Origin: Macrostomum lignano
Taxonomy: Eukaryota
Assembly: GCA_002269645.1 (NCBI GenBank)
Contig: NIVC01000217.1
Location: forward strand, 682,001 to 746,000
Length of the DNA stretch: 64,000 nucleotides
Direction of reading: 5' to 3'
In this document: positions 12,927-40,360 of the stretch, piece by piece
Layout of the letters: the number at the start of each line of letters is the position of its first letter
Numbering within the stretch: the first letter of the stretch is position 1
The notes under the pieces: generated by a model
Told to the model about the DNA's origin: nothing
Databases searched by the model: none
What the model saw: the letters and a program-made list of their open reading frames with translations, nothing else
Program-made: the position numbers and the translations under genes

Positions 12927-12969
12927 GTACGTATTGTGGCTTGGTACAGGTGTTGCTCTGTTGGTCACT

Positions 12970-13615: not shown

Positions 13616-13767
13616 GTCACTCTGTTCTGTCGGTTGGTCACCCTGTGTTCTGTCAGTTGGTCACAGGCCACATTTTGGTATCTAGTGTCTGTTAATAAAC
13701 ACGGTCAGTCTGCAACTTCCACATGGCTACCAACATTTCCCCCTTTCAAACTGAATGTCACTCTCAG

Positions 13768-16978: not shown

Positions 16979-17134
16979 TTAGGCCTCATCTTAGGTGAAA
17001 TTTTCCCTTTAATAACCACCGTGTTCCCAAGTTCAACCATATGACAAGTGGCTTATATTAGCAACCGATTCATTGTCAGTACCCGCAATAACGATTCAGC
17101 TCGTCAATTTCGTCAGTCCTGAGAGCCGCTTTGG

Positions 17135-18181
17135 CTATACGGGCGTAGCGTAGCACACGAAGCGACCTTTGAGAGCGTTAGTGCTGGTCGGATTGTAGCC
17201 GAGACGCAAGCACAGAGGAACTCCAGCGAACGCCAGGTAATTGTAAGCTCCATTAGCCATAGCCGTGCCGTTGAAATAAAATCTAGCAAATCGAATTCCA
17301 GTAAAAACGGCGGCAACTGAAACGTCCTGTGGTTGGTCGTCGGTGCGAAGGACATTCGATAACGACTGAATTGTCTCAGTCTGGTCCCCCGGCGCGCTCT
17401 GTTCAGAGAAGGAATGGCTGACGTACAGCTGACCGTTGCGATCGGAGAATTCGCCACGCTGACTGCCGTTGCAGTCGTGAAAGTAATGATAGTGTTGCTG
17501 GCCCCAGGTCTGCCGCACCGCTCTCGCATAGAAGGTGAAGTTGTGCGAGTGGTCCAGGTAGCCAGAAGCCAGCGTGTTACTATCAGTGTCGACCTCGATA
17601 AAATCCGCCTTGTTTCCTGGAAAGTGAGCGCCCTGGCTGTCTCGAGTGACCGAGCCGTGGGGAGTGGCCGGGTACTTGGCAGGATTAGCGAGGTTCGAGT
17701 AGCCCTGTCTGAAGTCAAACAAAATGACCAGCTTGTTGGCCAGAGCAGAGCTCAGACCTGAGATCACGGATACATGTGTGAGATTCGTAGCACTTGTTGG
17801 ACTCGTCAGAGCTCCAGTCTTGGTTGAAGCAGAGTTAGTAGAGTCGTCGTCGCTCTTCACGTAGGTCACGCAGCCGTCAGTTGGATCGGTGCTGATTCGG
17901 TCCCACAGACTGCTCAGCTGTAGACTGTTACCATGGTAACACTTGCCGTTGACTTTGGACAAGTGAACAGCGGAGCAGAGGTTGGAGCCAACACAGGCCA
18001 CAGTGCAGTCGAACAAGTCGTGGGCGAAGTCGACGGGACTCAGCGCGGCCAGGCTCGCCTCCGATGGGCACTTGAGCACAGGCCGGAGCAGCGAGGTCTT
18101 CTGGTTGGCGGAGCAGAGAGTTGCCAGCAGCAGTAGCGTCAGCAAAATGGCGTGGGAGCCCCAACGAGCTTTATTATACAT
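17135..18181 (-). CDS. Secreted PAN/apple-like + LamG/ConA-like protein; C-terminus truncated by an 8-nt insertion
   Basis: Hydrophobic signal peptide (AILLTLLLLATLCSA), C-x3-C-x5-C pattern (CTVACVGSNLC), and LamG-like motifs (LFDF, GAHFPG..FIEV, NFTF, FYFNG, LRLG). Clear paralogue of 29919-30935. Confidence 0.75.
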   Translation of the reverse strand: MYNKARWGSHAILLTLLLLATLCSANQKTSLLRPVLKCPSEASLAALSPVDFAHDLFDCTVACVGSNLCSAVHLSKVNGKCYHGNSLQLSSLWDRISTDPTDGCVTYVKSDDDSTNSASTKTGALTSPTSATNLTHVSVISGLSSALANKLVILFDFRQGYSNLANPAKYPATPHGSVTRDSQGAHFPGNKADFIEVDTDSNTLASGYLDHSHNFTFYARAVRQTWGQQHYHYFHDCNGSQRGEFSDRNGQLYVSHSFSEQSAPGDQTETIQSLSNVLRTDDQPQDVSVAAVFTGIRFARFYFNGTAMANGAYNYLAFAGVPLCLRLGYNPTSTNALKGRFVCYATPV

Positions 18182-19853
18182 TTTCCACTTCAGACAAAGC
18201 AAATGATTTGTTGTTTCGGTTATTGTCTGTTTGATTTGCAAGATGTTAGAACGATGCTCAAAATTGAGGCCCCGACTGTAGTCTGATATCTGTAGTTTAA
18301 ATACGGTTCTTACCTATTACATTTACGTCCATTTAAAGGCATCTGGAAGCACTTCTTTGTCTTTGACTGGCATTGAATTGCACCGATCTTGTCTGTCATT
18401 TAGTCAGTTTGCATTTTGAGTTTTCTGCTTAATGCACAGATAAAAGCGTCTTAAGTAACTCAGACATTGTCTGGAATATTTGAATGGAAGAAAGCTTTTT
18501 AGATTTATTGCATATTTTCTTTCACGAAAACAGCTCGTTATATGAGCAGAGAAACCGCATAAAACCCTGATTGTTAGGTGCTTTTCCACCCTACCGATTT
18601 AAAATTTTGATTGACAGCTTTCTTGATGGACAGCCAAGACACCACCAAGGATAGACTTTTACTGATACAATCGAGCTACATGTAAGAATGCTTCAATTGT
18701 AAAAAAGTTTTATGGTGCATGCGCGAAGGCAGGCCTCAGAACGCAACGCATCGTGTGCTCCAGTGTTGCTCAAGCGCCATGACTTACTTGTACAAATTCC
18801 AAAGTTACGAGTATTTAATAGCTTGTCTTGGTGTTCGTGTTACGGCTGCAGTTTCAAGTCAGTATAGAAAGAGATTTACTATATTGTTGCTTTGAAAATT
18901 ATTTCATTTGTTTAAAATTGATTCCTTTTGTTGTCTATTCTTTACATAGATAACAGGATTTGGTTTTTTCTTATCAACTAAGTCTTTTAAATGAATAACT
19001 GCGAGCACGTTCCCGGCGCTTTGGTTGAAAGCTGTTGCGCTAGTTAAATCGATGACCTACTACTTCGATCGTTGTAAAAAGCGAAGAAATACGAGCGTAA
19101 ATTTCTCTTTTTTATTTTGCAATTATAATGCAAGTCATGCCTATTGTTGATTAACTCAACTTAATTAATTATTAACTAGATTAAAGAAGTGATATCAAAA
19201 ATCTTTCTGAAGAAGCGTCTCAACGTGCGTCAGCTCTGTGTGTCTTGTGCTCGTCTTAATTAATTACACTACGAGCTATTTATCTTCAGAGCCGATCTCA
19301 AAGAGTGCCCATAAATATCGTTATACAATGACCAGAAAAAATGTAATATTCTCACGACTATAGTAGCGCTATACTCGGTAGTCAACAAAATTTGTGTTAT
19401 TATCATAACAAATCAATGTGATTTTTAAGACTTGAAGACATATCGAATATGCGCACACACAGGTCCCATATATTTTTTCAATCGTAGCAAAGCTACTTTA
19501 GTAGGTTTCGACAGAATAACAGAATGTTTCACTTTATAAAAAAGCATCTAAATCCGGAATTGGGCAGAACCAATTGAGCGTCTTTTGCGATGGAACATTG
19601 AACTGGACTTGACTATAATATAATCTGAAGAAGAAATATATTCCAATAATTGCTTATAAATAAACTGGTATTTAGATCGTTTCCCTAAGTCTGCAATTCG
19701 CTGTATAATTTTGCCTATCAGCATATTGCTGTCATTGAAATAGTACATGCTGACTTTTCGCATCTCTCGCAATTCAAGTCTAGTTTAGGCAAACCTTTCG
19801 CGTATACGACATTTTAGCGTCCACCTGAAGACTCCCAGAAATGCATTAATTTG

Positions 19854-20240
19854 TTATAGCCCTGGGGAAACGGGAACGGCTAACATGCCAGGTGATCCTG
19901 TTGATGATGAGTCCTCCATTGGCTCCGTACCCTTTACGTAGCTTTTGCACACAGCCGTGGGATCTCCAAGCGAATTGAAGTACTCGGACATATTCTTCTC
20001 GTTGCCCAAATAGCACACAAGGTCCTTCGATACGTATGCCACATAGCAGCTCTGTCGAGTCGCGCAGGCCCAGATACAAGACGCAGCACTGGCCTGAGCT
20101 GCATCGATTCTGTTCAGATGGATAAAATCAACTTCCGACGGGCAACTGAAAATGGTTTTAAACTTTGTCCGAGACTTTGGAGCACAGCTGTAGACTGCAG
20201 TTGCTGTTAGACACAGAAGAATAGTAACTTTGGTGAGCAT
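19854..20240 (-). CDS. Secreted PAN/apple-only paralogue (128 aa)
   Basis: Signal peptide and CIWACATRQSC...CYLG...CKSYVK. It aligns with the N-terminal half of the neighbouring paralogues and stops at PGL*. Confidence 0.75.
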   Translation of the reverse strand: MLTKVTILLCLTATAVYSCAPKSRTKFKTIFSCPSEVDFIHLNRIDAAQASAASCIWACATRQSCYVAYVSKDLVCYLGNEKNMSEYFNSLGDPTAVCKSYVKGTEPMEDSSSTGSPGMLAVPVSPGL

Positions 20241-20989
20241 TACTCTAGCTCCAGCTTCACTGAAAATGATGCTGCGCTTGTAGAGTCTTCATCGAAGCTT
20301 TTCTTCTACCTGTTATGCAGTACTTATATAACCAACGCCTTCAATGTAGAACAAAGAAATAGTCTCATGAATTGTGCACTGAACAAGCTGGAGTCTTACT
20401 TGTAAGAATGCTTTTGAGGCTACTTGAGAACCTACATCTGCTTTGCAAACAATATTTTCAGCCTTTGTTTTTGAAGTATCATCGTTTAGACTTTAAGAAA
20501 AGGGATCGTGCGGTAAGCTTTGTAAAAAAGCCTTTGAAGTGAAATTAAGTGGGGTGAAGAGTGGCGGGGTCTTTTATTTTAAGAGATCTGGCTCGCGCGT
20601 TTGCTTCTCAAATAAAATTCAACTCTTAGGTTGTAGACAATCAATGAATTAAAGAACACAAAAATTCACCAAACGTCCTGACTTGGCTCACGCGTTACTC
20701 GCAGCAATGACTACAACAAAAGAGACACATTTTTATAGGGGATACTCAGACATCGGGGCAGGTTACTCTGCTTTTTTCAGACTCTACATGTACTTCTTTC
20801 TTAGTACGTTGTCCTTATCTGTCAGAACGTCAGTACGTCAGTTCGATCCCATGCAGTGATTGATTGTTTTTTAAAGATTCCATTGTCAAAGCTTGATTTA
20901 ATAAACGCCATGAAATGGACAAATATAAATAACTTCTCAAGTCTTAAAATGGCCGGACTATATCCTCAGCAACATATACTGGACTATAG

Positions 20990-21478
20990 TGGACTATATT
21001 GGACTATAATAGTAAACTATAATAGTGGACTATAATAGTGGACTATAATAGTGGACTATATTAGTGGACTATAATAGTGGACTATAATAGTGGACTATAA
21101 TAGTGGACTATAATAGTGGACTATAATAGTGGACTATAATAGTGGACTATAATAGTGGACTATAATAGTGGACTATAATAGTGGACTATAATAGTGGACT
21201 ATAATAGTGGACTATAATAGTGGACTATAATAGTGGACTATAATAGTGGACTATAATAGTGGACTATAATAGTGGACTATAATAGTGGACTATAATAGTG
21301 GACTATAATAGTGGACTATAATAGTGGACTATAATAGTGGACTATAATAGTGGACTATAATAGTGGACTATAATAGTGGACTAAAATAGTGGACTATAAT
21401 AGTGGACTATAATAGTGGACTATAATAGTGGACTATAATAGTGGACTATAATAGTGGACTATAATAGTGGACTATATC
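20990..21478. repeat. 13-bp minisatellite (tagtggactataa)
   Basis: Directly visible, highly homogeneous. Confidence 0.95.
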
Positions 21479-21484
21479 CACTAT

Positions 21485-21735
21485 TCAAAAGTCGCCACTC
21501 TATGCGCCATGCAGTTAGCGACTTCTCTTGGACTATTCTGAAATAAAAGATACGAGAAAACTGATCGGGGTAGCTTTAATTCGTCCAACCCTTGCACACC
21601 GCTCCCCACTTCATTCCTCAACTCAAGTCTTCCATGGGTAGCTAAGTTGCGTCACTCGCAAAGATTCAGAGACTTTACCTGCACTCTCAAAAATGGCAAC
21701 CACAAACGGAATCTTCTGTGATGGCGACTTTTCGA
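21485..21735. mobile_element. ~250-bp MITE-like repeat; inverted copies at ~27700-27935 and ~35226-35461
   Basis: 11-bp TIR aaaagtcgcca/tggcgactttt. The interior matches the reverse complement of 27721-27933 with scattered mismatches. Confidence 0.65.
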
Positions 21736-22854: not shown

Positions 22855-23290
22855 AATCACACAAAATCTCTAAGGATCACACACAATCTCTCAGGATCAC
22901 ACAAAATCTCTCAGGATCACACACAATCTCTCAGGATCACACACAATCTCTCAGGATCACACAAAATCTCTCAGGATCACACACAATCTCTCAGGATCAC
23001 ACACAATCTCTCAGGATCACACACAATCTCTCAGGATCACACACAATCTCTCAGGATCACACAAAATCTCTCAGGATCACACACAATCTCTCAGGATCAC
23101 ACACAATCTCTCAGGATCACACACAATCTCTCAGGATCACACACAATCTCTTAGGGTCACACACAATCTCTCAGGATCACACAAAATCTCTCAGGATCAC
23201 ACACAATCTCTCAGGATCACACACAATCTCTCAGGATCACACACAATCTCTCAGGATCACACACAATCTCTCAGGATCACACCCAATCTC
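22855..23290. repeat. 20-bp minisatellite (tctctcaggatcacacacaa)
   Basis: Directly visible. Confidence 0.95.
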
Positions 23291-23353
23291 TTGATGTTAT
23301 ATGATGTTATAAAAGTTACTTTAAAGCAACTGAAATGTTTTACTGCAATCCTT

Positions 23354-23638
23354 TCAGCTATGCGATGTTTCCTGATTCGCACCTGAAATTTTCATGCGCC
23401 TACCAGCAGGAAAATGAGTACCGCCTGAGCTCTGCAATAAGTTGAACAGTTCGTTGAGCATGACCCTAGCGGCGGATGTTACCAGATGATTCACGCGTCT
23501 CATAAGCTCATTGTCGATCTCTCCTTGCATGACTTCGCTGCATTGCTGCTGCGGCAGAATGTCTTGCAGCTGTTCGGTTTGGAAGTTCAGGTATTCTTTG
23601 TAGGCATTTGGGTATTCCGACTCGTTGTACCAAGTTTC
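23354..23638 (-). CDS. Probable terminal exon of the TRPM-like channel (helical/coiled-coil-like tail)
   Basis: 95-codon open frame after gctcag|, in phase 0 with the donor at 24139: ETWYNESEYPNAYKEYLNFQTEQLQDIL...MLNELFNLLQ...SHS*. The acceptor is weak and the exon is not in the ORF track. Confidence 0.55.
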   Translation of the reverse strand, partial: ETWYNESEYPNAYKEYLNFQTEQLQDILPQQQCSEVMQGEIDNELMRRVNHLVTSAARVMLNELFNLLQSSGGTHFPAGRRMKISGANQETSHS

Positions 23639-23715
23639 CTGAGCGATGCAGTTGTTGACGTAAACTTACTTAAACTTTTTGATTGAATGCATGCTAGTAT
23701 TAATTGTACATGTAA

Positions 23716-23966
<251 letters not shown>

Positions 23967-24139
23967 GTTTTATGTTTGCATAAAAACATGTCTACTCATA
24001 TATATGTGCCTCCGTAGCTATTTCAGATCTTTTATAAGATTTATGCAAGAAATATATCATACTAGTGCCGAAAAGTATAAAAATTTGGCTGTGAAGTAGA
24101 AATTAAAGTAAAATAACATGTAAGAGCTAACTTGCTTAC

Positions 24140-26153
24140 CTTAAGTTGGCATTGATGGTAATTCCCAGGGTTTAGGACCTGATCCCGCCGCTTCTGGCAC
24201 CACTGGAAGATCTTGTAGATGTAGTGAATAAAGGAGAGCGGCGCGGGTACGGGACTGCAGCTCTGGTATTCGCGAAGCAGTTCAACGTTTCTTTTTCTCC
24301 AGATTTCCACCGACTTGCTGTCCATCCGGCTGACAGTCAGGCTGAACCGGGCGATCAGCAAGTTGATCATCACGATATTCGAGAGCAGTAGGAAGACGAA
24401 CATCATAACTCTGCTGAACCACTTGTAACCAAGGTGGTGCGCCACTTCTCCCAGTACCTGATCCTTATCTTTAGCCGTCTCAGTGGGAAGAACGTCAAAG
24501 TTGGTGAAGAGCAGGTTTAGCGGCAGCATGAACACCTGCAGAAAGGCATGCCAGCTGTAGTCAGACATGCTTCTGTCAGCTTCGGTCGAGGTGACAACCG
24601 GATACAGCAGGTTGAAGAAGAAAACTCCGAACGAATAAAATATGATCACAATAATGACAGAGAAAGGAATCAAGTCCTGGATGATCAAAGTCCTGAGCAT
24701 GGACACCACCGGACCGATTCGCTCCGAGTAGCCGAGGAAGGCGACAGATCGAAACCCCCAGAGCAGGAACGCGGTGCTCAGCACCATCTGGCAGGCGTAA
24801 GCGCTGTACGGAGTCGGCTGGGTCCACGTTCGATTAGCTGACGTACCGCGGAAGAGTGCCTGGTAGGCCGTTGAGTTGGTCTCGCTGCACATGGAGGAGC
24901 TTTCCACCCCTGTGACATAGTCGAAGATGCAGCCCCACATGGCAAGCTTCAGCAGCAGCCCGGCCCACATCAATATTAAGGCGGAACAGTCGAGTAGGTT
25001 GAGCACATCCTTGAAGTACACAGGGCACTTTACTTTAAAGTCGCATAAGTAAAGACGATCGATTCTGCTTCTTTTGCAGATGTCCAAAACCTCTTGCAAA
25101 GAAAAGGACAGAAAATAGGCTGCCAGAATGAATTCTACTGGCCAAAGTCGAAACGTTCTCGGAAGGTCCATAATGTACCAGGCGAAGAAGATGTTAAAGG
25201 TGATGAAAGAGAAAAGATGGATGTAAAATTTAATTTTTGGCTTTACGTATGGCTCTTGGAAGCATCTTTCTCCGCACGACTGAACTTCGTTGCCTATAGT
25301 CTCGTTGGATTTCTGGGGACTGTTGTTGGCTTCTGTCCGACCATCGTAATCATAAGAGTTGGCTTTCTTGGATTGCGCTCCGCAACACAGACAAGCGGCT
25401 CCAGGCGGGTCCCATTCTTCATTGATCAACCTGTGCAAGCACTCGGTGGCGTACAGATCTCCCTCTCCACACATGTCTATCATCTCCAACAGGGTGAAAT
25501 ATTTCCGTGTGTTTGCGCCTAGTTGGCATGGGAACTTTGGGCCTTTGGTGTCGTGATCATTGTCCGGAATCGATCCTTTAATGTAGCCAAAGAGCAGCTG
25601 CTTCTGGCTTTCGCTTGCTCTGAAGTAGAGCTCGTCAAGACAGTTCATAGCCAAGTTTGAAACATCAGCGTATAGCTTTTTCAGCTTCTTTTCATTCCCT
25701 TTCTTTGAGGCAATTTTCGGTCTCAATTTTATGAGCAAGCTGATGCAAGCGGGCAGCAGGTCGTGCCGTCTGGAACGAACCAGCTCAAGCAGAATGTCCA
25801 CTTTGTCGATAGCAATAGCCACGTCGACTATAGAGAGCTCGGAAAATTTATCCAATTCTACTTTCCCAAGCTTGTTATTGTCTGATTGCGAAAGCTTGGC
25901 CTTGATGAGTGGAGTTTTATCATCGATAATTAATTCGACCAATCTTTTTTGTCTCATTGGTGATCGTATTTTGTTGACGAGCCAGGCGATACTCCTCGGG
26001 ACGATCTTTCACGATGATGTCGAGCAGAGTTTCTACATCTAAATCCAAGCCTTCTCCATCCTGCAGCTCGGGAAGCTGCTGGATCTCGTCTTCCTGTGTC
26101 CCAGTGGAGCCAGCCTCAGCGTCAGAGTCCGGCTTGGATTCTTCAGAGCTCAT
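24140..26153 (-). CDS. Short TRPM-like cation channel, main exon (copy 1), with an apparent +1 frameshift at the T6 run 25945-25950
   Basis: Six hydrophobic segments; S3 LNLLD; S4-S5 IGPVVSML...DLIPF; S6 NIVMINLLIA; TRP-helix IW....LLREY..SPVPAPL; N-terminal LLDIIVKDRPEEYRL resembling the TRPM DRPEFVRL motif. Donor AAG|gtaagc at 24140/24139. Confidence 0.85.
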
Positions 26154-28080
26154 TGTGAATTCTTCGACACGATGTTATGCAGCAATGGTAGTTGACCTTT
26201 ACTGACCCTTATGGCTGTGCGCCTTACCGGACCTGCAGTTTGGTGGGTGAATTTGTAATTTAGCCTGGTATATTGACTCTGTTATACTGCATTGATGCTC
26301 TGCATATCCATGGATGACGGTGTAGACGCATGCACATCAAAGCTACTGTCATCAGAGACCACTGGTGATACGAAAACGCCATCACGTAGCCAGGCCAAGT
26401 TTTAATGGGGGGACGAATCTTTTCCCCAGGAGCTTTAGCAACAGAGGCTTTAGCACCAGAGGCTTTAGCACCAGTTTCTTAAGACACCAGGGCACCATCA
26501 CTTACAGGCTCTAAAGTTACATTAGTTTTGAAAAGCTGCAACATACTCTGGCCTTATAGCCAGAGTGCCAGGGGAACCAGAGGGTCCGCGGTCCCTCCCC
26601 TTCCAGCAGGCTTGGCGCCCCCCCCCCTCGACAGCAGGCTGAGACATGCCTCATAAAAAATCCTTGCTCAAACTACGCCTGTGATAAAGCTAGTAGTATT
26701 AAATAAACGGCTTAACATTTAAGCCGCGTGGTAGCGTGAGTTCGGGGCTAGCTGTTGACGATTATATACCTTAGTACCATTGTCTTAATTTCGGAAGCAT
26801 GTTATTGATTTCAACAGTTCAAATAGTAAAGTTTAAGAAAAGGCAAAACTTACGTTGTTCGTATAAATATAAAGCCAGCACAAACTGGCCAAACTAGCGC
26901 GACGGCTGAACTGCAACGGCAATGAGCAAATGAGCAACGGCTGAAAAGTGAAGCTGCCCCCCCCGGCGTCCTATTATACTGTGAGAAAAAGGGAACTTCA
27001 GTTTTGTTCGCTTATCATTTTGTTTATTTGAACTCAGTAAAAGATCGAGCTAATGGGCCTCAGATCTAAACAGTCATAGAGCAGCTCGAGACAGTATACT
27101 GAACATTACCCTAGTCATGAATAGCAAGCGTATACGCTCGACTATACTCTTAAGTGTTGTTGTGCTTCTCTGGTGTCCCGCGCCAAGCCTCTCCAGTCTG
27201 TCTTAAGTCACCTAGCTCGCACCTCACCCTGCCGCACTTGAATTACACGATGTACTGTATCAATAAAACTGGTAAATATAATGAAATTGATGGCCAAGTG
27301 GGGGCATGCCATGCCATTCTTCCCTCGGCCATGCAGGCGCGTTGACTACTTTCTAAACTCTACCTTGTAACAAGTGCGCGGTGTCTTGTCTGGCGAGCGC
27401 TCGTGTGGATGGACGCACAAAAAACAGTCAACAACAAATTGCAAAAGACAAAACTTATCATAAGTTCTCATACAGACTCTCAGCCCCATATAGGTACAGT
27501 TGTACGCAAACACACGAGTTAACAGTCACAGTGATATTAAAACTTAAGTCGCATGCACCATCTAGTTCGAGAGTGTTTGCGAAAGGCACGAAACGCTCGT
27601 AATAATAAAAACTATGCTTTAATGTTCCAAACTGCTCGAGAAGGGCAACGGGGGTAAAAATATGTACAGAAAATAAATATACTCAGCAACAAACAAGTAG
27701 AAAAGTCTTCATCAAAGAAAATTCCATCTGTGGTCGCCACTTTTGAGAGTGCGGGTAAAGTCTCTCAATCTTTGCGAGTGACTCAACTTGCTAAGGCCGC
27801 GGCAGACTTGAGTTGAGGAATGAAGTGTGCGAGGCTTGGACGGATTAAAGCTACCCCGATCAGTTTTCTCGTATCTTTTATTTCAGAATAATCCAAGAGA
27901 AATTGCTCACTGGCGCATAGAGTGGCGACTTTGCAATGTTTTCAAGTTTCGATTTTTCGAGGCATATACCCAGTGTGAATTACGCAGTTCGAAGCCTTGA
28001 CTATTGCCGTGACATTGCGCTTCTTTTGCTGTGCTTTATAAGTACTTCTTTTTTGTAACCATGGGGGTTGTAAGAAAGTA

Positions 28081-28380: not shown

Positions 28381-29484
28381 AATTCGTAACTAAATATTGT
28401 TGTGACTATTCTGTTTGATCCGAGTGATTTGACGGTTTTTAAACAATTTGATTGTCAAAGCTTGATCAAAGTAAACGTCATGAAATACATTACAGTATTA
28501 ACTACTAAGTAAAATTATGGATTTCATCTTTGCTTATTATAGAAGATGGGCACGTTAGCTTTCAAATACATGTTGCTTATTCTATAAAAAAGAAACCAAG
28601 GACCACTAGACTTAAACTATAATATAGTAGCTTACAATGAAATAGTAACAGTTTTATACGGTATTAGTAAAGACAGCTTTAATTGCTACTTTAAGTAATG
28701 CTTTATGAGCGCAAAGAATATTAAATAATAATTCAGCATTTGCGAAGAAGAGGTAACAATTTGGCCGATATGAAAGTCATTGAAAAATCTTTCAAGAGTT
28801 GCCTGTCACAGACCTGAACATAGCTCTTATCAGTAATAATGGAGCTTAACGTCCAAAAGTTTATACCGTTGGTGTACAGTATTAACTTTTTAAGTGCTCT
28901 TTAAGAGATAAATCTTGCTTAGGCAACGTTTTTGTATCACAATTTAAATTTGCCTACGAAGTATCGATCGACAGGGAAATACATTTAAAAAAATTTTGTT
29001 TAAAAGTTAAAGAAAAAATAGTAATAGAAATAGAAAGATTATCGATTAAGATTGATTCCAGCTTGAATATTAGTAGCAAGAGCAAATATCGTGGCATCAA
29101 AATAAAAAATGAAAAAAAATGATTACATATAAATTTATCAGTTACGTGTATTACGCTTAATCAAACATGCCAAAGGGTACAGGAATAAAAGAAAAGAGCG
29201 CATAAAAGTAGAGACTAAAAAATTAACCGACTTCACGTCCTTTCAGTTCCTGTCGGCATAAGTCCTGTCTTTAAAAGACTTAGCTGTACACCATAATGTA
29301 ACTGCATTGCACATACTTGCTAGATTGACCCAGCTATGGGTGTAACCCATAATTTATAATATAATATAAATTATGGGTGTAATTTATAATATAAACTGCA
29401 CATACCACACGTGACCATTCATTATACAGTTTTACCTATTAGAATGAGCACGCAAATCTATATTTAAAGCCTGTGGTCAGCCGT

Positions 29485-29552
29485 AGGGGTAGCCTATAGG
29501 GGTCTATAGCGCGTCGTTCTGATGTGCCAGCGTCCCAGGCTCGATTCCAAGT
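29485..29552 (+). other. Degenerate tRNA-like/SINE head (also at about +7526)
   Basis: A-box-like gggtagccta and B-box-like ggctcgattcc at tRNA-like spacing; a cloverleaf is not demonstrable. Confidence 0.25.
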
Positions 29553-29918
29553 TTAACGCCTTTGTGGGCCAACCCCAAATCTCAGTGAAGTGTACATGCC
29601 TAACGATTAAATCAATTTAGGACCGCTGTACACTCCTGGGTGAGTTTGTGACTGTGCGTATGACTCCGATATGTATCCGCGCACTTGTGTGCCAGCTCAG
29701 GGGAGTCGGCGCGAGGAATGGGCAGTAAATGCCTTTCGCCGGTTGTGTGACAATGTCGCTTAAAGTGCGCCCCGTTAAACACAGACCCACTGACTCTAAC
29801 TAAGTCAGGAGATGAAAGTTCTGCTGACAAGTGGCATATTGAATATTTTTTCCAAAAGTTCGATAATGCAAATAAAATGATCGTTGCTCAAATTCGATGA
29901 GTCTATGGATTTTTTCTT

Positions 29919-30935
29919 TTAAGTGTCTTGGCAAAAGTTGTCCAGCTGCTGCAGCTCAGCCTCCGTGAGCGCCTCCTTGGCTATAGCGTAACAAATCATC
30001 CGGCCTTGAAGAGCAGCACCAGAATCGGTTGAGTAGCCAAGACGCAAGCAGCTGGGAGTTCCAGACGGATTGTAGCCGGTACTAACGCCAGGACCAATGA
30101 AAGATCCATTCAGATAAAAGTTATTTAGACTGCCAACAGAGAACACAGCTCCGACGGATGCTAATTGAAGAGTGCCATCTGCCAGCAGCACTGCACTACT
30201 GCTGCTCTGAGAGACAAAAGTTGCATCGTGATACGATAGATGTTCAACGAATAATCTACCGCCCTGTTCACCCAAGTAACCTCGCTTGTTGTTAGTCGAA
30301 CAATCATAGAAATGGTGATAGACTTGCGCATTGTGCGCATTTCTAAGTAACCTGACAAAGAAGGTAAAGCTTTTTGTCTTTGTCAGGAAGCTCGGGACGA
30401 GAGTGTTGCCATCGTTGTCAACTTCAATATAGCTACTAACTCCTCCTGGAAAATAGGCACCTGAGGAGGTCTGCGAGATGGTACCGTAAGGAGTGACATT
30501 ATACTTAGCCGGATTAACCAGGTTGCTGTAGCCCTGCCTGAAGTCGTACAGTAGAAGCAGTTTCGAAGCCAGTGCGGAATCGAGTCCAGGCACTTGAGGC
30601 GCGGCTGCAGCGGTTGCCGCATTCTTGAAGTAGCTCACACATCCAGCAGCTGCAGGTGGGCTGGCGGGTGTAAAAATTGAACTCAGCTGAAATGCAGTGC
30701 CAAAATAGCAAATACCTTCCTGGCTTCGGTAAGTGGCCGCGCAGTCGGTTCTGGTTGCACATTTGTACACGCAGAGCTCTACCGAATGACTTCCTTCTAG
30801 CTTTTGTAGCTGTGAGATTTTCGCAGTTTCTGGGCACTTGTCCGTTTTAGCGAACTTTATAGAACTGGTCGGAGAGCAGCCGTGAGCAGTTGTCACAGCT
30901 GACCAAAGAATCAGGGGGAATAACACAGCCTGCAT
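29919..30935 (-). CDS. Secreted PAN/apple-like + LamG/ConA-like protein (intact, single exon, 338 aa)
   Basis: ATG at 30935 with signal peptide MQAVLFPLILWSAVTTAHG; CVYKCATRTDC; LLLYDF, GAYFPGG..YIEV, SFTF, FYLNG, LRLG and a terminal ALTEAELQQL helix typical of LamG3-like domains. Confidence 0.85.
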   Translation of the reverse strand: MQAVLFPLILWSAVTTAHGCSPTSSIKFAKTDKCPETAKISQLQKLEGSHSVELCVYKCATRTDCAATYRSQEGICYFGTAFQLSSIFTPASPPAAAGCVSYFKNAATAAAAPQVPGLDSALASKLLLLYDFRQGYSNLVNPAKYNVTPYGTISQTSSGAYFPGGVSSYIEVDNDGNTLVPSFLTKTKSFTFFVRLLRNAHNAQVYHHFYDCSTNNKRGYLGEQGGRLFVEHLSYHDATFVSQSSSSAVLLADGTLQLASVGAVFSVGSLNNFYLNGSFIGPGVSTGYNPSGTPSCLRLGYSTDSGAALQGRMICYAIAKEALTEAELQQLDNFCQDT

Positions 30936-31162
30936 TCTGTTGTTAGCTCGATCTGTATGCGTTGTGTCAGTAGAGAGTTGGCTTGCTAAGCAGTCTGGCA
31001 CTTGAAATTAATCGCTTTAGAGATGCTTCCATGAAAGTCGCCCAGGGCAACCAAGAGTAGCTTTGGTCTGCCAGCCAATTGAAGAGCTCATGTGACCAGT
31101 GCTGCTCAGCCACTAGTGAGTTTACTGTTGGAATAAGACAGGTTTTGGGGTATACCACAACA

Positions 31163-33677
31163 TCAAGCGCCCACTTCTATGTACATGCAGGGCAGGGGCG
31201 TATAGGTATGAGGGCAGGGGGCCGCGGACCCTCTATTAAGCTGGCAGAAATGATGGAGTCTCTTAAGATGGTGTCCCTTACGATGGCGTCCCTTACGATG
31301 GCGTCCCTTACGATGGCGTCCCTTACGATGGCGTCCCTTACGATGGCGTCCCTTACGATGGCGTCCCTTACGATGGCGTCCCTTACGATGGCGTCCCTTA
31401 CGATGGCGTCCCTTACGATGGCGTCCCTTACGATGGCGTCCCTTACGATGGCGTCCCTTACGATGGCGTCCCTTACGATGGCGTCCCTTACGATGGCGTC
31501 CCTTACGATGGCGTCCCTTACGATGGCGTCCCTTACGATGGCGTCCCTTACGATGGCGTCCCTTACGATGGCGTCCCTTACGATGGCGTCCCTTACGATG
31601 GCGTCCCTTACGATGGCGTCCCTTACGATGGCGTCCCTTACGATGGCTATCCCAGGCATTGATGGTAAGTTGGCATTGATGGTAATTCCCAGGGTTTAGG
31701 ACCTGATCCCGCCGCTTCTGGCACCACTGGAAGATCTTGTAGATGTAGTGAATAAAGGAGAGCGGCGCGGGTACGGGACTGCAGCTCTGGTATTCGCGAA
31801 GCAGTTCAACGTTTCTTTTTCTCCAGATTTCCACCGACTTGCTGTCCATCCGGCTGACAGTCAGGCTGAACCGGGCGATCAGCAAGTTGATCATCACGAT
31901 ATTCGAGAGCAGTAGGAAGACGAACATCATAACTCTGCTGAACCACTTGTAACCAAGGTGGTGCGCCACTTCTCCCAGTACCTGATCCTTATCTTTAGCC
32001 GTCTCAGTGGGAAGAACGTCAAAGTTGGTGAAGAGCAGGTTTAGCGGCAGCATGAACACCTGCAGAAAGGCATGCCAGCTGTAGTCAGACATGCTTCTGT
32101 CAGCTTCGGTCGAGGTGACAACCGGATACAGCAGGTTGAAGAAGAAAACTCCGAACGAATAAAATATGATCACAATAATGACAGAGAAAGGAATCAAGTC
32201 CTGGATGATCAAAGTCCTGAGCATGGACACCACCGGACCGATTCGCTCCGAGTAGCCGAGGAAGGCGACAGATCGAAACCCCCAGAGCAGGAACGCGGTG
32301 CTCAGCACCATCTGGCAGGCGTAAGCGCTGTACGGAGTCGGCTGGGTCCACGTTCGATTAGCTGACGTACCGCGGAAGAGTGCCTGGTAGGCCGTTGAGT
32401 TGGTCTCGCTGCACATGGAGGAGCTTTCCACCCCTGTGACATAGTCGAAGATGCAGCCCCACATGGCAAGCTTCAGCAGCAGCCCGGCCCACATCAATAT
32501 TAAGGCGGAACAGTCGAGTAGGTTGAGCACATCCTTGAAGTACACAGGGCACTTTACTTTAAAGTCGCATAAGTAAAGACGATCGATTCTGCTTCTTTTG
32601 CAGATGTCCAAAACCTCTTGCAAAGAAAAGGACAGAAAATAGGCTGCCAGAATGAATTCTACTGGCCAAAGTCGAAACGTTCTCGGAAGGTCCATAATGT
32701 ACCAGGCGAAGAAGATGTTAAAGGTGATGAAAGAGAAAAGATGGATGTAAAATTTAATTTTTGGCTTTACGTATGGCTCTTGGAAGCATCTTTCTCCGCA
32801 CGACTGAACTTCGTTGCCTATAGTCTCGTTGGATTTCTGGGGACTGTTGTTGGCTTCTGTCCGACCATCGTAATCATAAGAGTTGGCTTTCTTGGATTGC
32901 GCTCCGCAACACAGACAAGCGGCTCCAGGCGGGTCCCATTCTTCATTGATCAACCTGTGCAAGCACTCGGTGGCGTACAGATCTCCCTCTCCACACATGT
33001 CTATCATCTCCAACAGGGTGAAATATTTCCGTGTGTTTGCGCCTAGTTGGCATGGGAACTTTGGGCCTTTGGTGTCGTGATCATTGTCCGGAATCGATCC
33101 TTTAATGTAGCCAAAGAGCAGCTGCTTCTGGCTTTCGCTTGCTCTGAAGTAGAGCTCGTCAAGACAGTTCATAGCCAAGTTTGAAACATCAGCGTATAGC
33201 TTTTTCAGCTTCTTTTCATTCCCTTTCTTTGAGGCAATTTTCGGTCTCAATTTTATGAGCAAGCTGATGCAAGCGGGCAGCAGGTCGTGCCGTCTGGAAC
33301 GAACCAGCTCAAGCAGAATGTCCACTTTGTCGATAGCAATAGCCACGTCGACTATAGAGAGCTCGGAAAATTTATCCAATTCTACTTTCCCAAGCTTGTT
33401 ATTGTCTGATTGCGAAAGCTTGGCCTTGATGAGTGGAGTTTTATCATCGATAATTAATTCGACCAATCTTTTTTGTCTCATTGGTGATCGTATTTTGTTG
33501 ACGAGCCAGGCGATACTCCTCGGGACGATCTTTCACGATGATGTCGAGCAGAGTTTCTACATCTAAATCCAAGCCTTCTCCATCCTGCAGCTCGGGAAGC
33601 TGCTGGATCTCGTCTTCCTGTGTCCCAGTGGAGCCAGCCTCAGCGTCAGAGTCCGGCTTGGATTCTTCAGAGCTCAT
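31163..33677 (-). CDS. TRPM-like channel copy 2: same frameshift (T6 33469-33474), lacks the splice donor and reads through into the 15-bp array, giving an (RKGRH)n tail
   Basis: Identical to copy 1 up to HQCQL, then TINAWDSH(RKGRH)n...IEVGA*. Confidence 0.7.
31268..31646. repeat. 15-bp minisatellite (atggcgtcccttacg), ~25 units
   Basis: Directly visible; unit count taken from the ORF length. Confidence 0.97.
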
Positions 33678-35606
33678 TGTGAATTCTTCGACACGATGTT
33701 ATGCAGCAATGGTAGTTGACCTTTACTGACCCTTATGGCTGTGCGCCTTACCGGACCTGCAGTTTGGTGGGTGAATTTGTAATTTAGCCTGGTATATTGA
33801 CTCTGTTATACTGCATTGATGCTCTGCATATCCATGGATGACGGTGTAGACGCATGCACATCAAAGCTACTGTCATCAGAGACCACTGGTGATACGAAAA
33901 CGCCATCACGTAGCCAGGCCAAGTTTTAATGGGGGGACGAATCTTTTCCCCAGGAGCTTTAGCAACAGAGGCTTTAGCACCAGAGGCTTTAGCACCAGTT
34001 TCTTAAGACACCAGGGCACCATCACTTACAGGCTCTAAAGTTACATTAGTTTTGAAAAGCTGCAACATACTCTGGCCTTATAGCCAGAGTGCCAGGGGAA
34101 CCAGAGGGTCCGCGGTCCCTCCCCTTCCAGCAGGCTTGGCGCCCCCCCCCCCCTCGACAGCAGGCTGAGACATGCCTCATAAAAAATCCTTGCTCAAACT
34201 ACGCCTGTGATAAAGCTAGTAGTATTAAATAAACGGCTTAACATTTAAGCCGCGTGGTAGCGTGAGTTCGGGGCTAGCTGTTGACGATTATATACCTTAG
34301 TACCATTGTCTTAATTTCGGAAGCATGTTATTGATTTCAACAGTTCAAATAGTAAAGTTTAAGAAAAGGCAAAACTTACGTTGTTCGTATAAATATAAAG
34401 CCAGCACAAACTGGCCAAACTAGCGCGACGGCTGAACTGCAACGGCAATGAGCAAATGAGCAACGGCTGAAAAGTGAAGCTGCCCCCCCCGGCGTCCTAT
34501 TATACTGTGAGAAAAAGGGAACTTCAGTTTTGTTCGCTTATCATTTTGTTTATTTGAACTCAGTAAAAGATCGAGCTAATGGGCCTCAGATCTAAACAGT
34601 CATAGAGCAGCTCGAGACAGTATACTGAACATTACCCTAGTCATGAATAGCAAGCGTATACGCTCGACTATACTCTTAAGTGTTGTTGTGCTTCTCTGGT
34701 GTCCCGCGCCAAGCCTCTCCAGTCTGTCTTAAGTCACCTAGCTCGCACCTCACCCTGCCGCACTTGAATTACACGATGTACTGTATCAATAAAACTGGTA
34801 AATATAATGAAATTGATGGCCAAGTGGGGGCATGCCATGCCATTCTTCCCTCGGCCATGCAGGCGCGTTGACTACTTTCTAAACTCTACCTTGTAACAAG
34901 TGCGCGGTGTCTTGTCTGGCGAGCGCTCGTGTGGATGGACGCACAAAAAACAGTCAACAACAAATTGCAAAAGACAAAACTTATCATAAGTTCTCATACA
35001 GACTCTCAGCCCCATATAGGTACAGTTGTACGCAAACACACGAGTTAACAGTCACAGTGATATTAAAACTTAAGTCGCATGCACCATCTAGTTCGAGAGT
35101 GTTTGCGAAAGGCACGAAACGCTCGTAATAATAAAAACTATGCTTTAATGTTCCAAACTGCTCGAGAAGGGCAACGGGGGTAAAAATATGTACAGAAAAT
35201 AAATATACTCAGCAACAAACAAGTAGAAAAGTCTTCATCAAAGAAAATTCCATCTGTGGTCGCCACTTTTGAGAGTGCGGGTAAAGTCTCTCAATCTTTG
35301 CGAGTGACTCAACTTGCTAAGGCCGCGGCAGACTTGAGTTGAGGAATGAAGTGTGCGAGGCTTGGACGGATTAAAGCTACCCCGATCAGTTTTCTCGTAT
35401 CTTTTATTTCAGAATAATCCAAGAGAAATTGCTCACTGGCGCATAGAGTGGCGACTTTGCAATGTTTTCAAGTTTCGATTTTTCGAGGCATATACCCAGT
35501 GTGAATTACGCAGTTCGAAGCCTTGACTATTGCCGTGACATTGCGCTTCTTTTGCTGTGCTTTATAAGTACTTCTTTTTTGTAACCATGGGGGTTGTAAG
35601 AAAGTA

Positions 35607-35906
35607 GGGGGTTGTAGCCGAGTGGTTAGAGCGCCGGGACTCACGACTTGAAGGTCGGGGGTTCGATTCCCTATTCCACAAGAACAATTTGTGTCCTTGA
35701 GCAGGACACTCTTAACTCTGCATTGCTACAGTTCACCCAGCTGTAAAATGGGTGCCAGCATTAGCTGGGGTAATTGAGGGTGTGTGGCGACCCCCCAGTC
35801 CTTGGACTGAACAGCCGTACGCAGCCTTCAGATGCGCCGAGCAATTTATAGCTGTGGGTTGCACATCTGGCGCAATTTGGTGGGTATAATCAATTATCAT
35901 TATTAT
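35607..35906 (+). mobile_element. Duplicated copy of the CORE-like tRNA-SINE
   Basis: Matches 28081-28380 at offset 7526. Confidence 0.75.
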
Positions 35907-37444
35907 AATTCGTAACTAAATATTGTTGTGACTATTCTGTTTGATCCGAGTGATTTGACGGTTTTTAAACAATTTGATTGTCAAAGCTTGATCAAAGTAA
36001 ACGTCATGAAATACATTACAGTATTAACTACTAAGTAAAATTATGGATTTCATCTTTGCTTATTATAGAAGATGGGCACGTTAGCTTTCAAATACATGTT
36101 GCTTATTCTATAAAAAAGAAACCAAGGACCACTAGACTTAAACTATAATATAGTAGCTTACAATGAAATAGTAACAGTTTTTTTTGGTATTAGTAAAGAC
36201 AGCTTTAATTGCTACTTTAAGTAATGCTTTATGAGCGCAAAGAATATTAAATAATAATTCAGCATTTGCGAAGAAGAGGTAACAATTTGGCCGATATGAA
36301 AGTCATTGAAAAATCTTTCAAGAGTTGCCTGTCACAGACCTGAACATAGCTCTTATCAGTAATAATGGAGCTTAACGTCCAAAAGTTTATACCGTTGGTG
36401 TACAGTATTAACTTTTTAAGTGCTCTTTAAGAGATAAATCTTGCTTAGGCAACGTTTTTGTATCACAATTTAAATTTGCCTACGAAGTATCGATCGACAG
36501 GGAAATACATTTAAAAAAATTTTGTTTAAAAGTTAAAGAAAAAATAGTAATAGAAATAGAAAGATTATCGATTAAGATTGATTCCAGCTTGAATATTAGT
36601 AGCAAGAGCAAATATCGTGGCATCAAAATAAAAAATGAAAAAAAATGATTACATATAAATTTATCAGTTACGTGTATTACGCTTAATCAAACATGCCAAA
36701 GGGTACAGGAATAAAAGAAAAGAGCGCATAAAAGTAGAGACTAAAAAATTAACCGACTTCACGTCCTTTCAGTTCCTGTCGGCATAAGTCCTGTCTTTAA
36801 AAGACTTAGCTGTACACCATAATGTAACTGCATTGCACATACTTGCTAGATTGACCCAGCTATGGGTGTAACCCATAATTTATAATATAATATAAATTAT
36901 GGGTGTAATTTATAATATAAACTGCACATACCACACGTGACCATTCATTATACAGTTTTACCTATTAGAATGAGCACGCAAATCTATATTTAAAGCCTGT
37001 GGTCAGCCGTAGGGGTAGCCTATAGGGGTCTATAGCGCGTCGTTCTGATGTGCCAGCGTCCCAGGCTCGATTCCAAGTTTAACGCCTTTGTGGGCCAACC
37101 CCAAATCTCAGTGAAGTGTACATGCCTAACGATTAAATCAATTTAGGACCGCTGTACACTCCTGGGTGAGTTTGTGACTGTGCGTATGACTCCGATATGT
37201 ATCCGCGCACTTGTGTGCCAGCTCAGGGGAGTCGGCGCGAGGAATGGGCAGTAAATGCCTTTCGCCGGTTGTGTGACAATGTCGCTTAAAGTGCGCCCCG
37301 TTAAACACAGACCCACTGACTCTAACTAAGTCAGGAGATGAAAGTTCTGCTGACAAGTGGCATATTGAATATTTTTTCCAAAAGTTCGATAATGCAAATA
37401 AAATGATCGTTGCTCAAATTCGATGAGTCTATGGATTTTTTCTT

Positions 37445-38461
37445 TTAAGTGTCTTGGCAAAAGTTGTCCAGCTGCTGCAGCTCAGCCTCCGTGAGCGCCT
37501 CCTTGGCTATAGCGTAACAAATCATCCGGCCTTGAAGAGCAGCACCAGAATCGGTTGAGTAGCCAAGACGCAAGCAGCTGGGAGTTCCAGACGGATTGTA
37601 GCCGGTACTAACGCCAGGACCAATGAAAGATCCATTCAGATAAAAGTTATTTAGACTGCCAACAGAGAACACAGCTCCGACGGATGCTAATTGAAGAGTG
37701 CCATCTGCCAGCAGCACTGCACTACTGCTGCTCTGAGAGACAAAAGTTGCATCGTGATACGATAGATGTTCAACGAATAATCTACCGCCCTGTTCACCCA
37801 AGTAACCTCGCTTGTTGTTAGTCGAACAATCATAGAAATGGTGATAGACTTGCGCATTGTGCGCATTTCTAAGTAACCTGACAAAGAAGGTAAAGCTTTT
37901 TGTCTTTGTCAGGAAGCTCGGGACGAGAGTGTTGCCATCGTTGTCAACTTCAATATAGCTACTAACTCCTCCTGGAAAATAGGCACCTGAGGAGGTCTGC
38001 GAGATGGTACCGTAAGGAGTGACATTATACTTAGCCGGATTAACCAGGTTGCTGTAGCCCTGCCTGAAGTCGTACAGTAGAAGCAGTTTCGAAGCCAGTG
38101 CGGAATCGAGTCCAGGCACTTGAGGCGCGGCTGCAGCGGTTGCCGCATTCTTGAAGTAGCTCACACATCCAGCAGCTGCAGGTGGGCTGGCGGGTGTAAA
38201 AATTGAACTCAGCTGAAATGCAGTGCCAAAATAGCAAATACCTTCCTGGCTTCGGTAAGTGGCCGCGCAGTCGGTTCTGGTTGCACATTTGTACACGCAG
38301 AGCTCTACCGAATGACTTCCTTCTAGCTTTTGTAGCTGTGAGATTTTCGCAGTTTCTGGGCACTTGTCCGTTTTAGCGAACTTTATAGAACTGGTCGGAG
38401 AGCAGCCGTGAGCAGTTGTCACAGCTGACCAAAGAATCAGGGGGAATAACACAGCCTGCAT
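37445..38461 (-). CDS. Secreted PAN/apple + LamG/ConA-like protein, duplicate copy
   Basis: Translation identical to 29919-30935. Confidence 0.85.
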   Translation of the reverse strand: MQAVLFPLILWSAVTTAHGCSPTSSIKFAKTDKCPETAKISQLQKLEGSHSVELCVYKCATRTDCAATYRSQEGICYFGTAFQLSSIFTPASPPAAAGCVSYFKNAATAAAAPQVPGLDSALASKLLLLYDFRQGYSNLVNPAKYNVTPYGTISQTSSGAYFPGGVSSYIEVDNDGNTLVPSFLTKTKSFTFFVRLLRNAHNAQVYHHFYDCSTNNKRGYLGEQGGRLFVEHLSYHDATFVSQSSSSAVLLADGTLQLASVGAVFSVGSLNNFYLNGSFIGPGVSTGYNPSGTPSCLRLGYSTDSGAALQGRMICYAIAKEALTEAELQQLDNFCQDT

Positions 38462-38793
38462 TCTGTTGTTAGCTCGATCTGTATGCGTTGTGTCAGTAGA
38501 GAGTTGGCTTGCTAAGCAGTCTGGCACTTGAAATTAATCGCTTTAGAGATGCTTCCATGAAAGTCGCCCAGGGCAACCAAGAGTAGCTTTGGTCTGCCAG
38601 CCAATTGAAGAGCTCATGTGACCAGTGCTGCTCAGCCACTAGTGAGTTTACTGTTGGAATAAGACAGGTTTTGGGGTATACCACAACATCAAGCGCCCAC
38701 TTCTATGTACATGCAGGGCAGGGGCGTATAGGTATGAGGGCAGGGGGCCGCGGACCCTCTATTAAGCTGGCAGAAATGATGGAGTCTCTTAAG

Positions 38794-39209
38794 ATGGTGT
38801 CCCTTACGATGGCGTCCCTTACGATGGCGTCCCTTACGATGGCGTCCCTTACGATGGCGTCCCTTACGATGGCGTCCCTTACGATGGCGTCCCTTACGAT
38901 GGCGTCCCTTACGATGGCGTCCCTTACGATGGCGTCCCTTACGATGGCGTCCCTTACGATGGCGTCCCTTACGATGGCGTCCCTTACGATGGCGTCCCTT
39001 ACGATGGCGTCCCTTACGATGGCGTCCCTTACGATGGCGTCCCTTACGATGGCGTCCCTTACGATGGCGTCCCTTACGATGGCGTCCCTTACGATGGCGT
39101 CCCTTACGATGGCGTCCCTTACGATGGCGTCCCTTACGATGGCGTCCCTTACGATGGCGTCCCTTACGATGGCGTCCCTTACGATGGCGTCCCTTACGAT
39201 GGCGTCCCT
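38794..39209. repeat. 15-bp minisatellite, ~27-28 units
   Basis: Directly visible. Confidence 0.97.
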
Positions 39210-39539
39210 AAAAAGCGACCCCAAGGTTGAAGACCCCGCGGTGGCACCTCTGGCTACTGGCGCCCCTCGCTGTCGCTGGCGCTCCCCAAAGACGCAGCCC
39301 CCCTCCCCTGCAATTGAAAAATATACACATCAAAGACTCGCGGGAGGACATTCAAACTGCTTTTAAATTTTATGGTTTTTCAAGTCAGGCAGACTTTAAT
39401 CAGCTTCTTGGGGTATTAGAAATCTAGTGACAGAATGCAAAAAAATTATTACAATTTCTACGCTCGTATGAGTATTGCAGATATGCTGCACTGTAAAGCC
39501 TGTAGTTAAAGTGCTGACTCCTCTCGCGCCCACGGTAGA

Positions 39540-40360
39540 GTGCGTCTGCTTCAAGAACTCCTTTTTCTATTGTTTAGCAACGCCATCTCAGGTCTTTCAA
39601 CCATCTCCTACCTTCTTGCATTCAACCCATCTGCCTTTCTACTTCTAATGGCTTGTCCTCAGTTGACGAAACCCCTCATTATGGAGCTGCAAGACAAGAC
39701 AGCTGTGCCTGCTCACGGTTGCTCAATAGGCCTCCGCTCCTACTAAATTTTTGTCCTAAATTATTGATTTGCAGTCGCTGCATCCATGACAAGGCCTGTC
39801 AAATTCTCGCATCTTTGGAAGCCAGCAGCATTTTTTTTCTTAACTTGACGACTTGACAATTTACAGAGCTAGGCAAAGCAATAAAATTTAGGCGGATGTA
39901 AAAGCAACATTACTACTTTTATAAAAATAAAAAGTAACATGTGAGGCATGTTTGGTCTTTTGTTTTGTATTGGACTAACGTAAAAAGAACGTATAAAATT
40001 ATTCTTTTTAGTAAAAAAATCGATTTTGGTCACACCAACCCGTCCGAGTGTGCTCCCAATCATCGCAGCCGCTCGAGAGAATCATTTTCAGTGAACCAAA
40101 CTCAAACTACCAATCGAGATTGACACCGCGATGGATTCTGTCTGACAACAATCTACTTGAACTCAGCTCTTGTAACTTTACCTTTTCTGTAAATCTGATG
40201 AGACAGACTTGGAACCAGTAGAATATTACATGTTTCACGACTGCAACGAGCTAAATTCTGAGATCGTATCGCCAAGTATCCGTATCTGGATCAACGGAGA
40301 TGGTAGGGTTCAAATGCCGTTGAACAGGGCCCACTCAGCTGGGATAACTGGAAAATGAGC
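39540..40360 (+). pseudogene. Decayed, inverted member of the PAN-LamG family
   Basis: IEIDT (40113), NFTFSVNLMRQTWNQ (40174-40218) and, after a 1-nt frameshift, EYYMFHDCN (40221) align with IEVDT / NFTFYARAVRQTWGQQHYHYFHDCN of the 17135 gene. The signal-like and CSRCIHDKAC remnants upstream are weaker. Confidence 0.65.

Follow-up and report, generated by a model that had tools for sequence, protein, structure and literature searches.

A 64-kb stretch of the genome of the flatworm Macrostomum lignano (assembly Mlig_3_7, GCA_002269645.1; contig NIVC01000217.1), hereafter the window, carries a cluster of related open reading frames (ORFs) with secreted-type N-termini. The locus raises the question of what family these ORFs represent and whether copies are being gained and lost. 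A sequence-only reading of the window had proposed a lineage-specific, rapidly turning-over family joining a PAN/apple domain to a LamG/ConA-like domain. The answer favored here, with confidence somewhat above even, is that the ORFs belong to one uncharacterised family of small secreted proteins, restricted to Macrostomum and locally clustered here. Under this reading each protein would begin with a cleavable N-terminal signal followed by a single six-cysteine apple/PAN domain; a short linker of low complexity would join this to a single β-sandwich of ConA-like (Laminin_G_3) type. At its end the sandwich would carry an amphipathic helix, probably pinned by a disulfide bond that we infer to run from the cysteine of the 'C-Y/F-A/G' strand to the C-terminal cysteine.

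Four uninterrupted minus-strand ORFs of one family (members A, B, C, and D) were found in the window, with agreement among tblastn, a family hidden Markov model (HMM) searched against the six-frame translation, and nhmmer. The family HMM scored C and D at E 3e-108, A at 3e-99, and B at 2e-14 (1.7e-14); no other ORF scored in the six-frame translation of the 64 kb. A fifth element, an inverted relic of an A-like LamG domain, was detected by nhmmer across the whole window (E ~1e-7) and by blastn (63.5% identity over 137 nt). The relic holds stops and a frameshift and was at noise level by protein HMM alone. A weaker match near 39700-39745 ('AVPAHGCS' versus 'AVTTAHGCS' of C) is possibly a remnant of its signal-peptide region. 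The sequence-only reading had listed at least five family elements, with single-exon coding copies and an inverted pseudogene, and all five were recovered where it had placed them, the pseudogene being present but small.

The copies differ in their state of repair. Two identical intact genes had been reported: C and D are indeed 100% identical and intact, but they stem from one duplication event and are not two independently conserved genes. Member A, which shares 39-40% amino acid identity with C, is the C-terminally frameshifted copy. In frame it ends 'CYATPV*', while the other frame gives 'IAKAALRTDEIDELNRYCGY' to position 17076, matching 'IAKEALTEAELQQLDNFCQDT' of C. The C-terminal helix and terminal cysteine of A are thus encoded out of frame, beyond a gctac|gctac duplication and down to a stop at 17076-17078, the left edge that had been claimed for the cluster; nhmmer homology extended to 17088. 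Member B (~30% identical to C) is the PAN-only copy, whose ORF stops at the linker ('PGL') between PAN and LamG. In the 1.6 kb downstream of B (18242-19853), neither the HMM nor tblastn gave any signal for a second exon or a LamG half.

Profile searches, structure prediction, and Foldseek supported a PAN/apple domain followed by a ConA-like/Laminin_G_3 β-sandwich, as the sequence-only reading had it. The PAN cysteines are spaced C-x20-C-x3-C-x5-C-x10-C-x22-C, an apple-type pattern; C11, C32, C36, C42, and C53 were invariant among 12 sequences, and the sixth cysteine was found in A, B, and C. The AlphaFold2 (AF2) model of C, built from a 15-sequence alignment, had a predicted local distance difference test score (pLDDT) of 84.5 and a predicted template modelling score (pTM) of 0.71, compared with a pLDDT of 41 from the three window sequences alone. 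In the model, a disordered signal region precedes an apple-type α/β domain (residues 27-105), and a linker then leads to a β-sandwich (126-319) followed by a terminal helix (325-337). The apple domain (pLDDT 81-90) contained strands at 27-31, 33-35, 44-46, 67-70, 76-79, 88-90, and 100-105 and a helix at 52-60, giving the expected fold of one helix on a small antiparallel sheet. Residues 126-319 formed a two-sheet jelly-roll of 13-14 strands, with pLDDT mostly 80-97. Foldseek matched this β-sandwich to ConA-like lectin jelly-rolls with a probability of 1.00 (269 PDB matches at E<=1e-3), at a query-normalised TM score of 0.40-0.47 over ~240 aligned columns and 10-17% identity.

Pfam PAN_1 (PF00024) matched seven of the 15 family members at E<=0.01, and Laminin_G_3 (PF13385, clan CL0004) matched four of the 15 at the same threshold (best 8.7e-8). 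On A the Laminin_G_3 match had an E-value of 0.15. Against the PDB, the whole-length family profile gave chance-level matches only, while separate PAN and LamG profiles gave signal, the LamG-only profile matching ConA-like jelly-rolls marginally (E 0.007-0.03). The label 'pentraxin-like' given earlier did not survive: there was no Pentaxin match in Pfam at E<=1, the signature H-x-C-x-[ST]-W-x-[ST] was absent from A and C, and the best family was Laminin_G_3. Hydrophobic stretches at the N-termini (maxima 2.2-3.0), together with low pLDDT there, suggest signal peptides and secretion of A-D; the secreted-type N-termini reported earlier agree with this as predicted signals only.

The best match of the family PAN profile was to the N-terminal PAN domains of a fungal copper-radical oxidase (6ryv/6ryx; E 1.6e-8 for 6ryx), which share the 'CP' start and the C-x3-C-x5-C core. 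In the fungal enzyme the PAN domains sit on a kelch-type catalytic domain, whereas the flatworm proteins have no enzymatic domain. Toxoplasma MIC4 (4a5v, 2ll3; E 6e-4) and the HGF N domain (E 0.019), both extracellular disulfide-locked binding modules, followed. The apple domains of Toxoplasma MIC4 bind galactose. MIC4 and vertebrate apple proteins have tandem apples or protease/kringle partners and no LamG_3, unlike the flatworm proteins, in which a single apple precedes a jelly-roll. The apple domains of factor XI/prekallikrein matched the family PAN profile at chance level (E 0.13-0.21).

The best 50 of the 269 Foldseek matches were ConA-like lectin domains of clostridial neurotoxins/NTNH and of trypanosome (trans-)sialidases. 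These jelly-rolls (trypanosome trans-sialidase, clostridial neurotoxin N-sub-domain) share the β-sandwich and the LamG_3 C-terminal strand motif with the flatworm proteins, which, unlike them, have no sialidase propeller, β-trefoil, translocation, or protease domain and add a family-specific C-terminal helix and cysteines. From Foldseek and the LamG profile, the likeness is a superfamily-level, generic jelly-roll resemblance and not kinship. A clostridial neurotoxin receptor-binding domain was considered and rejected: the jelly-roll half alone was matched, and the 338-residue protein ends after the jelly-roll and one helix.

Fifteen relatives were returned when 1.84 billion representative proteins were searched exhaustively with a profile. 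Twelve were M. lignano predictions, two had no species label (including P0015), and one (P0011) was an apparently bacterial Laminin_G_3 protein, whose LamG_3 ending '...G.IDEVR.Y.RALS..EI' aligned with the family C-terminal motif. A word-indexed homology search returned nothing with C and only one protein with the 15-sequence profile. An exact-match look-up of the C sequence in public assemblies had nothing on record, and the proteins of A-D were absent from a collection of 15 billion proteins. No named or characterised family of this kind, and nothing on apple/PAN families in flatworms, was found in the searchable literature. By these searches the family looks restricted to Macrostomum and uncharacterised, consistent with the earlier proposals that it is lineage-specific and belongs to no recognised named family.

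The M. lignano relatives bear automatic names: either 'Apple domain-containing protein' or the name of a neighbour merged into an old gene model. Those of the first kind (A0A267E973/PAA58135.1, A0A267DNP4/PAA50913.1, UPI0007A151EB) have the same two domains and cysteine pattern as the window copies and the same ending, 'L-x-G-x3-C-[YF]-[GA] ... L-[TS]-x2-E-[FL]-x2-L-x3-C'. Like the window copies they are ~330-370 residues long and come from single-exon or near single-exon genes. They are 20-42% identical to the window copies and none is characterised; the window copies are in no protein set. As for names of the second kind, in the old ab initio models P0003, P0007, P0017, and P0021 PAN-LamG units are joined to neighbours that have nothing to do with them: a WSC-like region with an ANK/Ion_trans channel, an inositol phosphatase, a multi-pass membrane protein, and a sirtuin. 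As a consequence of such fusions, some UniProt names are misleading (e.g., 'inositol-1,4-bisphosphate 1-phosphatase').

P0015 (543 residues; Logan transcript-like contig SRR30276804, L005 262-1893) has the same C-terminal β-sandwich, helix, cysteine, and ending 'CFGIAHVALTEAELAGAFMRYCP', but carries two C-type lectin domains (Lectin_C) N-terminally instead of PAN. The LamG_3-like domain can thus occur with partners other than PAN. Altogether, the apple plus LamG_3 family so defined has about a dozen lineages, deeply diverged from one another, and a confident structural model. The domain combination is uncharacterised; both domains, and tandem birth-and-death dynamics, are already well known, and nothing is overturned.

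The proteins may bind extracellular glycans or glycoproteins, as a soluble lectin, an agglutinin, or a matrix/mucus component, because both domain classes are mainly binding modules and because P0015 joins the same β-sandwich to C-type lectins. The specific roles suggested by the sequence-only reading (immune, mucus/adhesion, or reproductive) would be no more than candidates. Regeneration, bioadhesion, and sexual conflict are all studied in M. lignano in the laboratory, and adhesion, mucus, immunity, and seminal fluid typically involve secreted proteins restricted to a lineage. The family, its unannotated copies, and the structural model together offer experimenters concrete targets.

Several observations count against this overall account. 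The window proteins miss the Pfam gathering scores: narrowly for Laminin_G_3 on C (E 7e-6; 26.4-26.6 bits versus 27.6), and more widely for PAN_3 (E 0.14 for C and 0.82 for B). It is the family profile, and not any single sequence, that supports PAN membership, since the window PAN scores are far under the cut-off. No ligand-binding residues were identified, and the 10-17% identity to solved relatives is too low for site transfer. Because contacts between proteins are likewise made through PAN and LamG modules, 'lectin' is not established. No gene model for A, B, or C exists in the transcript-based annotation, and these copies may be silent. Finally, the C/D duplication differs only at homopolymer-type sites, in an assembly known to be redundant. 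The last two points each bear on a distinct rival explanation and are taken up below.

Pairwise identity within the family is 17-42%, with A, C, and P0001 forming a subgroup at 39-42%. Cysteines and a few motifs are kept, much as the sequence-only reading had described strong divergence outside them. In the window, A, B, and C are 30-40% identical. Between A and C, nonsynonymous divergence (dN) was 0.68 and synonymous divergence (dS) was >4 (4.1 or undefined). Because dS is saturated, there is no valid selection estimate for this pair and only the codon-position pattern is informative: identity at positions 1, 2, and 3 was 0.51, 0.59, and 0.34, respectively. This pattern is typical of long purifying selection and suggests that A and C, which appear to be old paralogues, were coding genes through most of their evolution. 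Elsewhere in the genome, another tandem pair is seen in the old gene model P0007, whose two tandem units share 50% identity, and the loci of other members (L002-L004, L006) have one member each, two or more of them single-exon.

Tandem paralogues of different ages thus occur with pseudogenes at one locus, which is a birth-and-death pattern: besides duplications that are old there is one that is very recent, and three copies (A, B, and the relic) are damaged or decayed. The earlier claim of rapid turnover is only partly supported. The recent duplication and the three damaged copies favor it, while the age of A and C, with their saturated dS, does not. In the proposed history, A, B, and C would go back to old tandem duplications and would then have been under purifying selection for a long time. 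D would have come from a very recent tandem duplication of 7.5 kb, which copied most of an unrelated ion-channel gene as well. Copies would have been lost through the 5-nt duplication frameshift in A, the loss (or original lack) of the LamG half in B, and the near-complete erasure of the inverted fragment.

C and D are identical because a 7.5-kb block carrying one member was tandemly duplicated. Self-comparison showed 24142-31647 and 31666-39173 to be tandem copies with 99.93% identity over 7508 nt. Their only differences are a 2-nt change in poly-C length and one ATAC/TTTT cluster. At the junction, the minisatellite at the end of the first copy adjoins 3' coding sequence of the channel gene, and GGCATTGATGGTAA occurs twice (31650-31690). 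This short repeat suggests that the duplication may have arisen by template-switch or slippage.

The duplication is regarded as genuine and very recent. Because Mlig_3_7 is known to be redundant, the C/D pair and the second channel copy could instead be an artefact of this PacBio-based assembly, which we judge unlikely. In that case the locus would contain a relic and only three distinct members, and the birth-and-death picture would lose its 'recent birth' half. Such an artefact would fit the kind of difference seen, as a poly-C length change and a cluster beside a T-run are typical long-read errors; both units end in a minisatellite, where assemblers often slip; and the assembly paper reports heavy redundancy, with 180 Mb in blocks >=95% identical. 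It fits poorly with the junction, a specific, non-repetitive novel sequence (minisatellite end, two copies of GGCATTGATGGTAA, channel 3' coding sequence) that looks like a biological template-switch. The minisatellite lengths are also unequal between the two copies (26 versus 29 units), and the authors of the assembly annotated separate transcript-based genes on both channel copies. The 7.5-kb unit, whose junction is defined, offers a good test of how recent duplication can be told from assembly redundancy in a difficult genome.

The GenBank annotation of Mlig_3_7 derives from a genome-guided transcriptome, from which non-coding transcripts and those overlapping the repeat annotation were dropped (assembly paper). 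In a fetched 22.6-kb record of the same contig (L001; window 35957-13354, 100% identity), both channel copies and one flanking gene were called, but none of A, B, or C. D lies outside this record, but the protein sequence that C and D have in common has no entry in the collection of 15 billion proteins. The reference annotation lacks at least four copies. Other family members (L002-L004, L006) have transcript-based gene models, so the family as such is expressed, while expression of the window copies is unproven. Expression or tissue data on the annotated members, sought by Mlig gene numbers, were not found in the searchable literature or in supplements of M. lignano papers.

All window copies could accordingly be dead or silent, a graveyard whose working members lie elsewhere, with C and D simply free of lesions so far. 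This is rather unlikely. It would account for the lack of annotation on A-D beside two annotated channel copies, for their absence from every protein collection, for the visible damage to A, B, and the relic, and for the lack of a canonical poly(A) hexamer in the 400 nt that follow C, D, or B. It is harder to reconcile with C, which keeps a 338-codon ORF and every family-invariant residue despite 40% identity to A, and with A, where an apparently recent lesion has cost no more than the last ~20 residues. The repeat filter of the annotation could have removed C and D, because both sit beside a minisatellite in a duplicated block, and restricted or inducible expression would also go undetected.

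Table 1. Coordinates of family members, duplication units, and associated features in the window.
Feature	Position	Strand	Description
Member A	17076-18181	-	Signal-peptide-like N-terminus, PAN/apple, LamG_3-like domain; ATG 18181, in-frame stop 17135
5-nt tandem duplication gctac|gctac in A	17145-17154	-	Frameshifts last ~20 codons (direct sequence reading)
Member B	19854-20240	-	128-aa PAN-only ORF, hydrophobic N-terminus, six PAN cysteines
Ion_trans channel BOX15_Mlig022208g1	23354-25957	-	700 aa, spliced; co-duplicated with C, not a family member
Segmental duplication copy 1	24142-31647		Channel gene body, spacer, member C, 15-nt minisatellite
Member C	29919-30935	-	Intact 338-aa PAN + LamG_3-like ORF
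15-nt minisatellite GATGGCGTCCCTTAC	31252-31647		26 copies, right end of copy 1
Duplicated channel copy	31658-33481	-	Truncated at duplication junction; ORF runs into minisatellite
Segmental duplication copy 2	31666-39173		99.93% identical to copy 1; carries D
Member D	37445-38461	-	338 aa, 100% identical to C; in second copy of segmental duplication
Minisatellite counterpart, copy 2	38778-39209		29 copies of 15-nt unit
Inverted relic	40035-40282	+	~250-nt decayed fragment, A-like LamG domain (= nt 494-750 of A)

The gene copied along with C encodes an ankyrin/Ion_trans-type channel, and a 631-aa ORF within it (24062-25957) is 100% identical to NCBI protein BOX15_Mlig022208g1. The duplicated copy lacks the last exon, and translation of its ORF continues into the 15-nt minisatellite as ~26 RHRKG repeats. 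A candidate 5' splice site of the channel gene (AAG|GTAAGC) lies 2 nt inside the left edge of the first duplication unit (24142). The same contig carries, ~480 kb away and beside EF-hand genes (L009), a tandem pair of channel paralogues with 84% and 67% identity.

The secreted PAN-LamG protein and the adjacent channel might form a ligand-receptor gene pair duplicating as a unit, an explanation that is very improbable. It draws on the order D - channel - C - channel on one strand, with one of each per unit, and on the old model P0003, in which distant paralogues of the PAN-LamG gene (26% identity) and of the channel (35%) are merged. Other neighbourhoods do not repeat the arrangement: no PAN-LamG gene was found within 10 kb of the channel paralogues at L007, L009, and L010, and no channel was found near the PAN-LamG loci L002-L004 and L006. 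At the P0003-like locus (L008) none was found in the 10 kb fetched; the PAN-LamG part would lie more than 10 kb off, beyond the left edge, with another gene between. The duplicated channel copy is, moreover, truncated. Conserved linkage of PAN-LamG and channel genes was judged weak from these neighbourhoods (L002-L004, L006-L010). A wider proposal, in which co-evolving ligand and channel are copied together and the expansion is a chemosensory or self/non-self system of soluble lectin-like ligands gating or tuning channels, has a smaller probability still. If true, it would make the flatworm-specific expansion a recognition system with dedicated channels. The channel is best taken as an unrelated neighbour of the PAN-LamG cluster.

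A ~248-nt repeat is present at 21488-21733 in direct orientation and at 27700-27932 and 35226-35458 in inverted orientation (84% identity), one per duplication copy; it may be a small dispersed or MITE-like element. A transposable element-borne origin of the cluster was rejected, since the flanks of A, B, and C have no common repeats except the segmental duplication and one 248-nt element.

Overall, the composition of the window is in keeping with Mlig_3_7, having a (CTGT)n-type satellite, many minisatellites, and long terminal repeat (LTR) retroelements; the assembly paper gives 21% LTR elements and 15% tandem repeats. The (CTGT)n-type satellite spans 6.6 kb (1715-8364; ~1660 copies, 76% match), is strongly AT- and GC-skewed, and gives rise in several frames to spurious ORFs >2000 aa. 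Minisatellites of 12-46 nt and a (TAC)84 microsatellite are unusually dense: 8731-13664, 16452-16979, 20986-21476, 22856-23291, 23716-23966, 47461-48199, and 59175-59527. Several of these yield long artefactual ORFs on both strands. In the GenBank annotation, a gene of 1496 aa with a Beta-prop_HPS5 domain ends below 13905 on the plus strand. Decayed retroelement parts occupy 48392-51212 on the plus strand: a SAP-domain ORF, an RVT_1 fragment, and an RNase H fragment. A BEL/Pao-type LTR retrotransposon at 52506-58910 has 258-nt LTRs 100% identical to each other and one unbroken 1825-aa gag-pol ORF (DUF1759, Peptidase_A17, RVT_1, integrase), and looks like a very young insertion.

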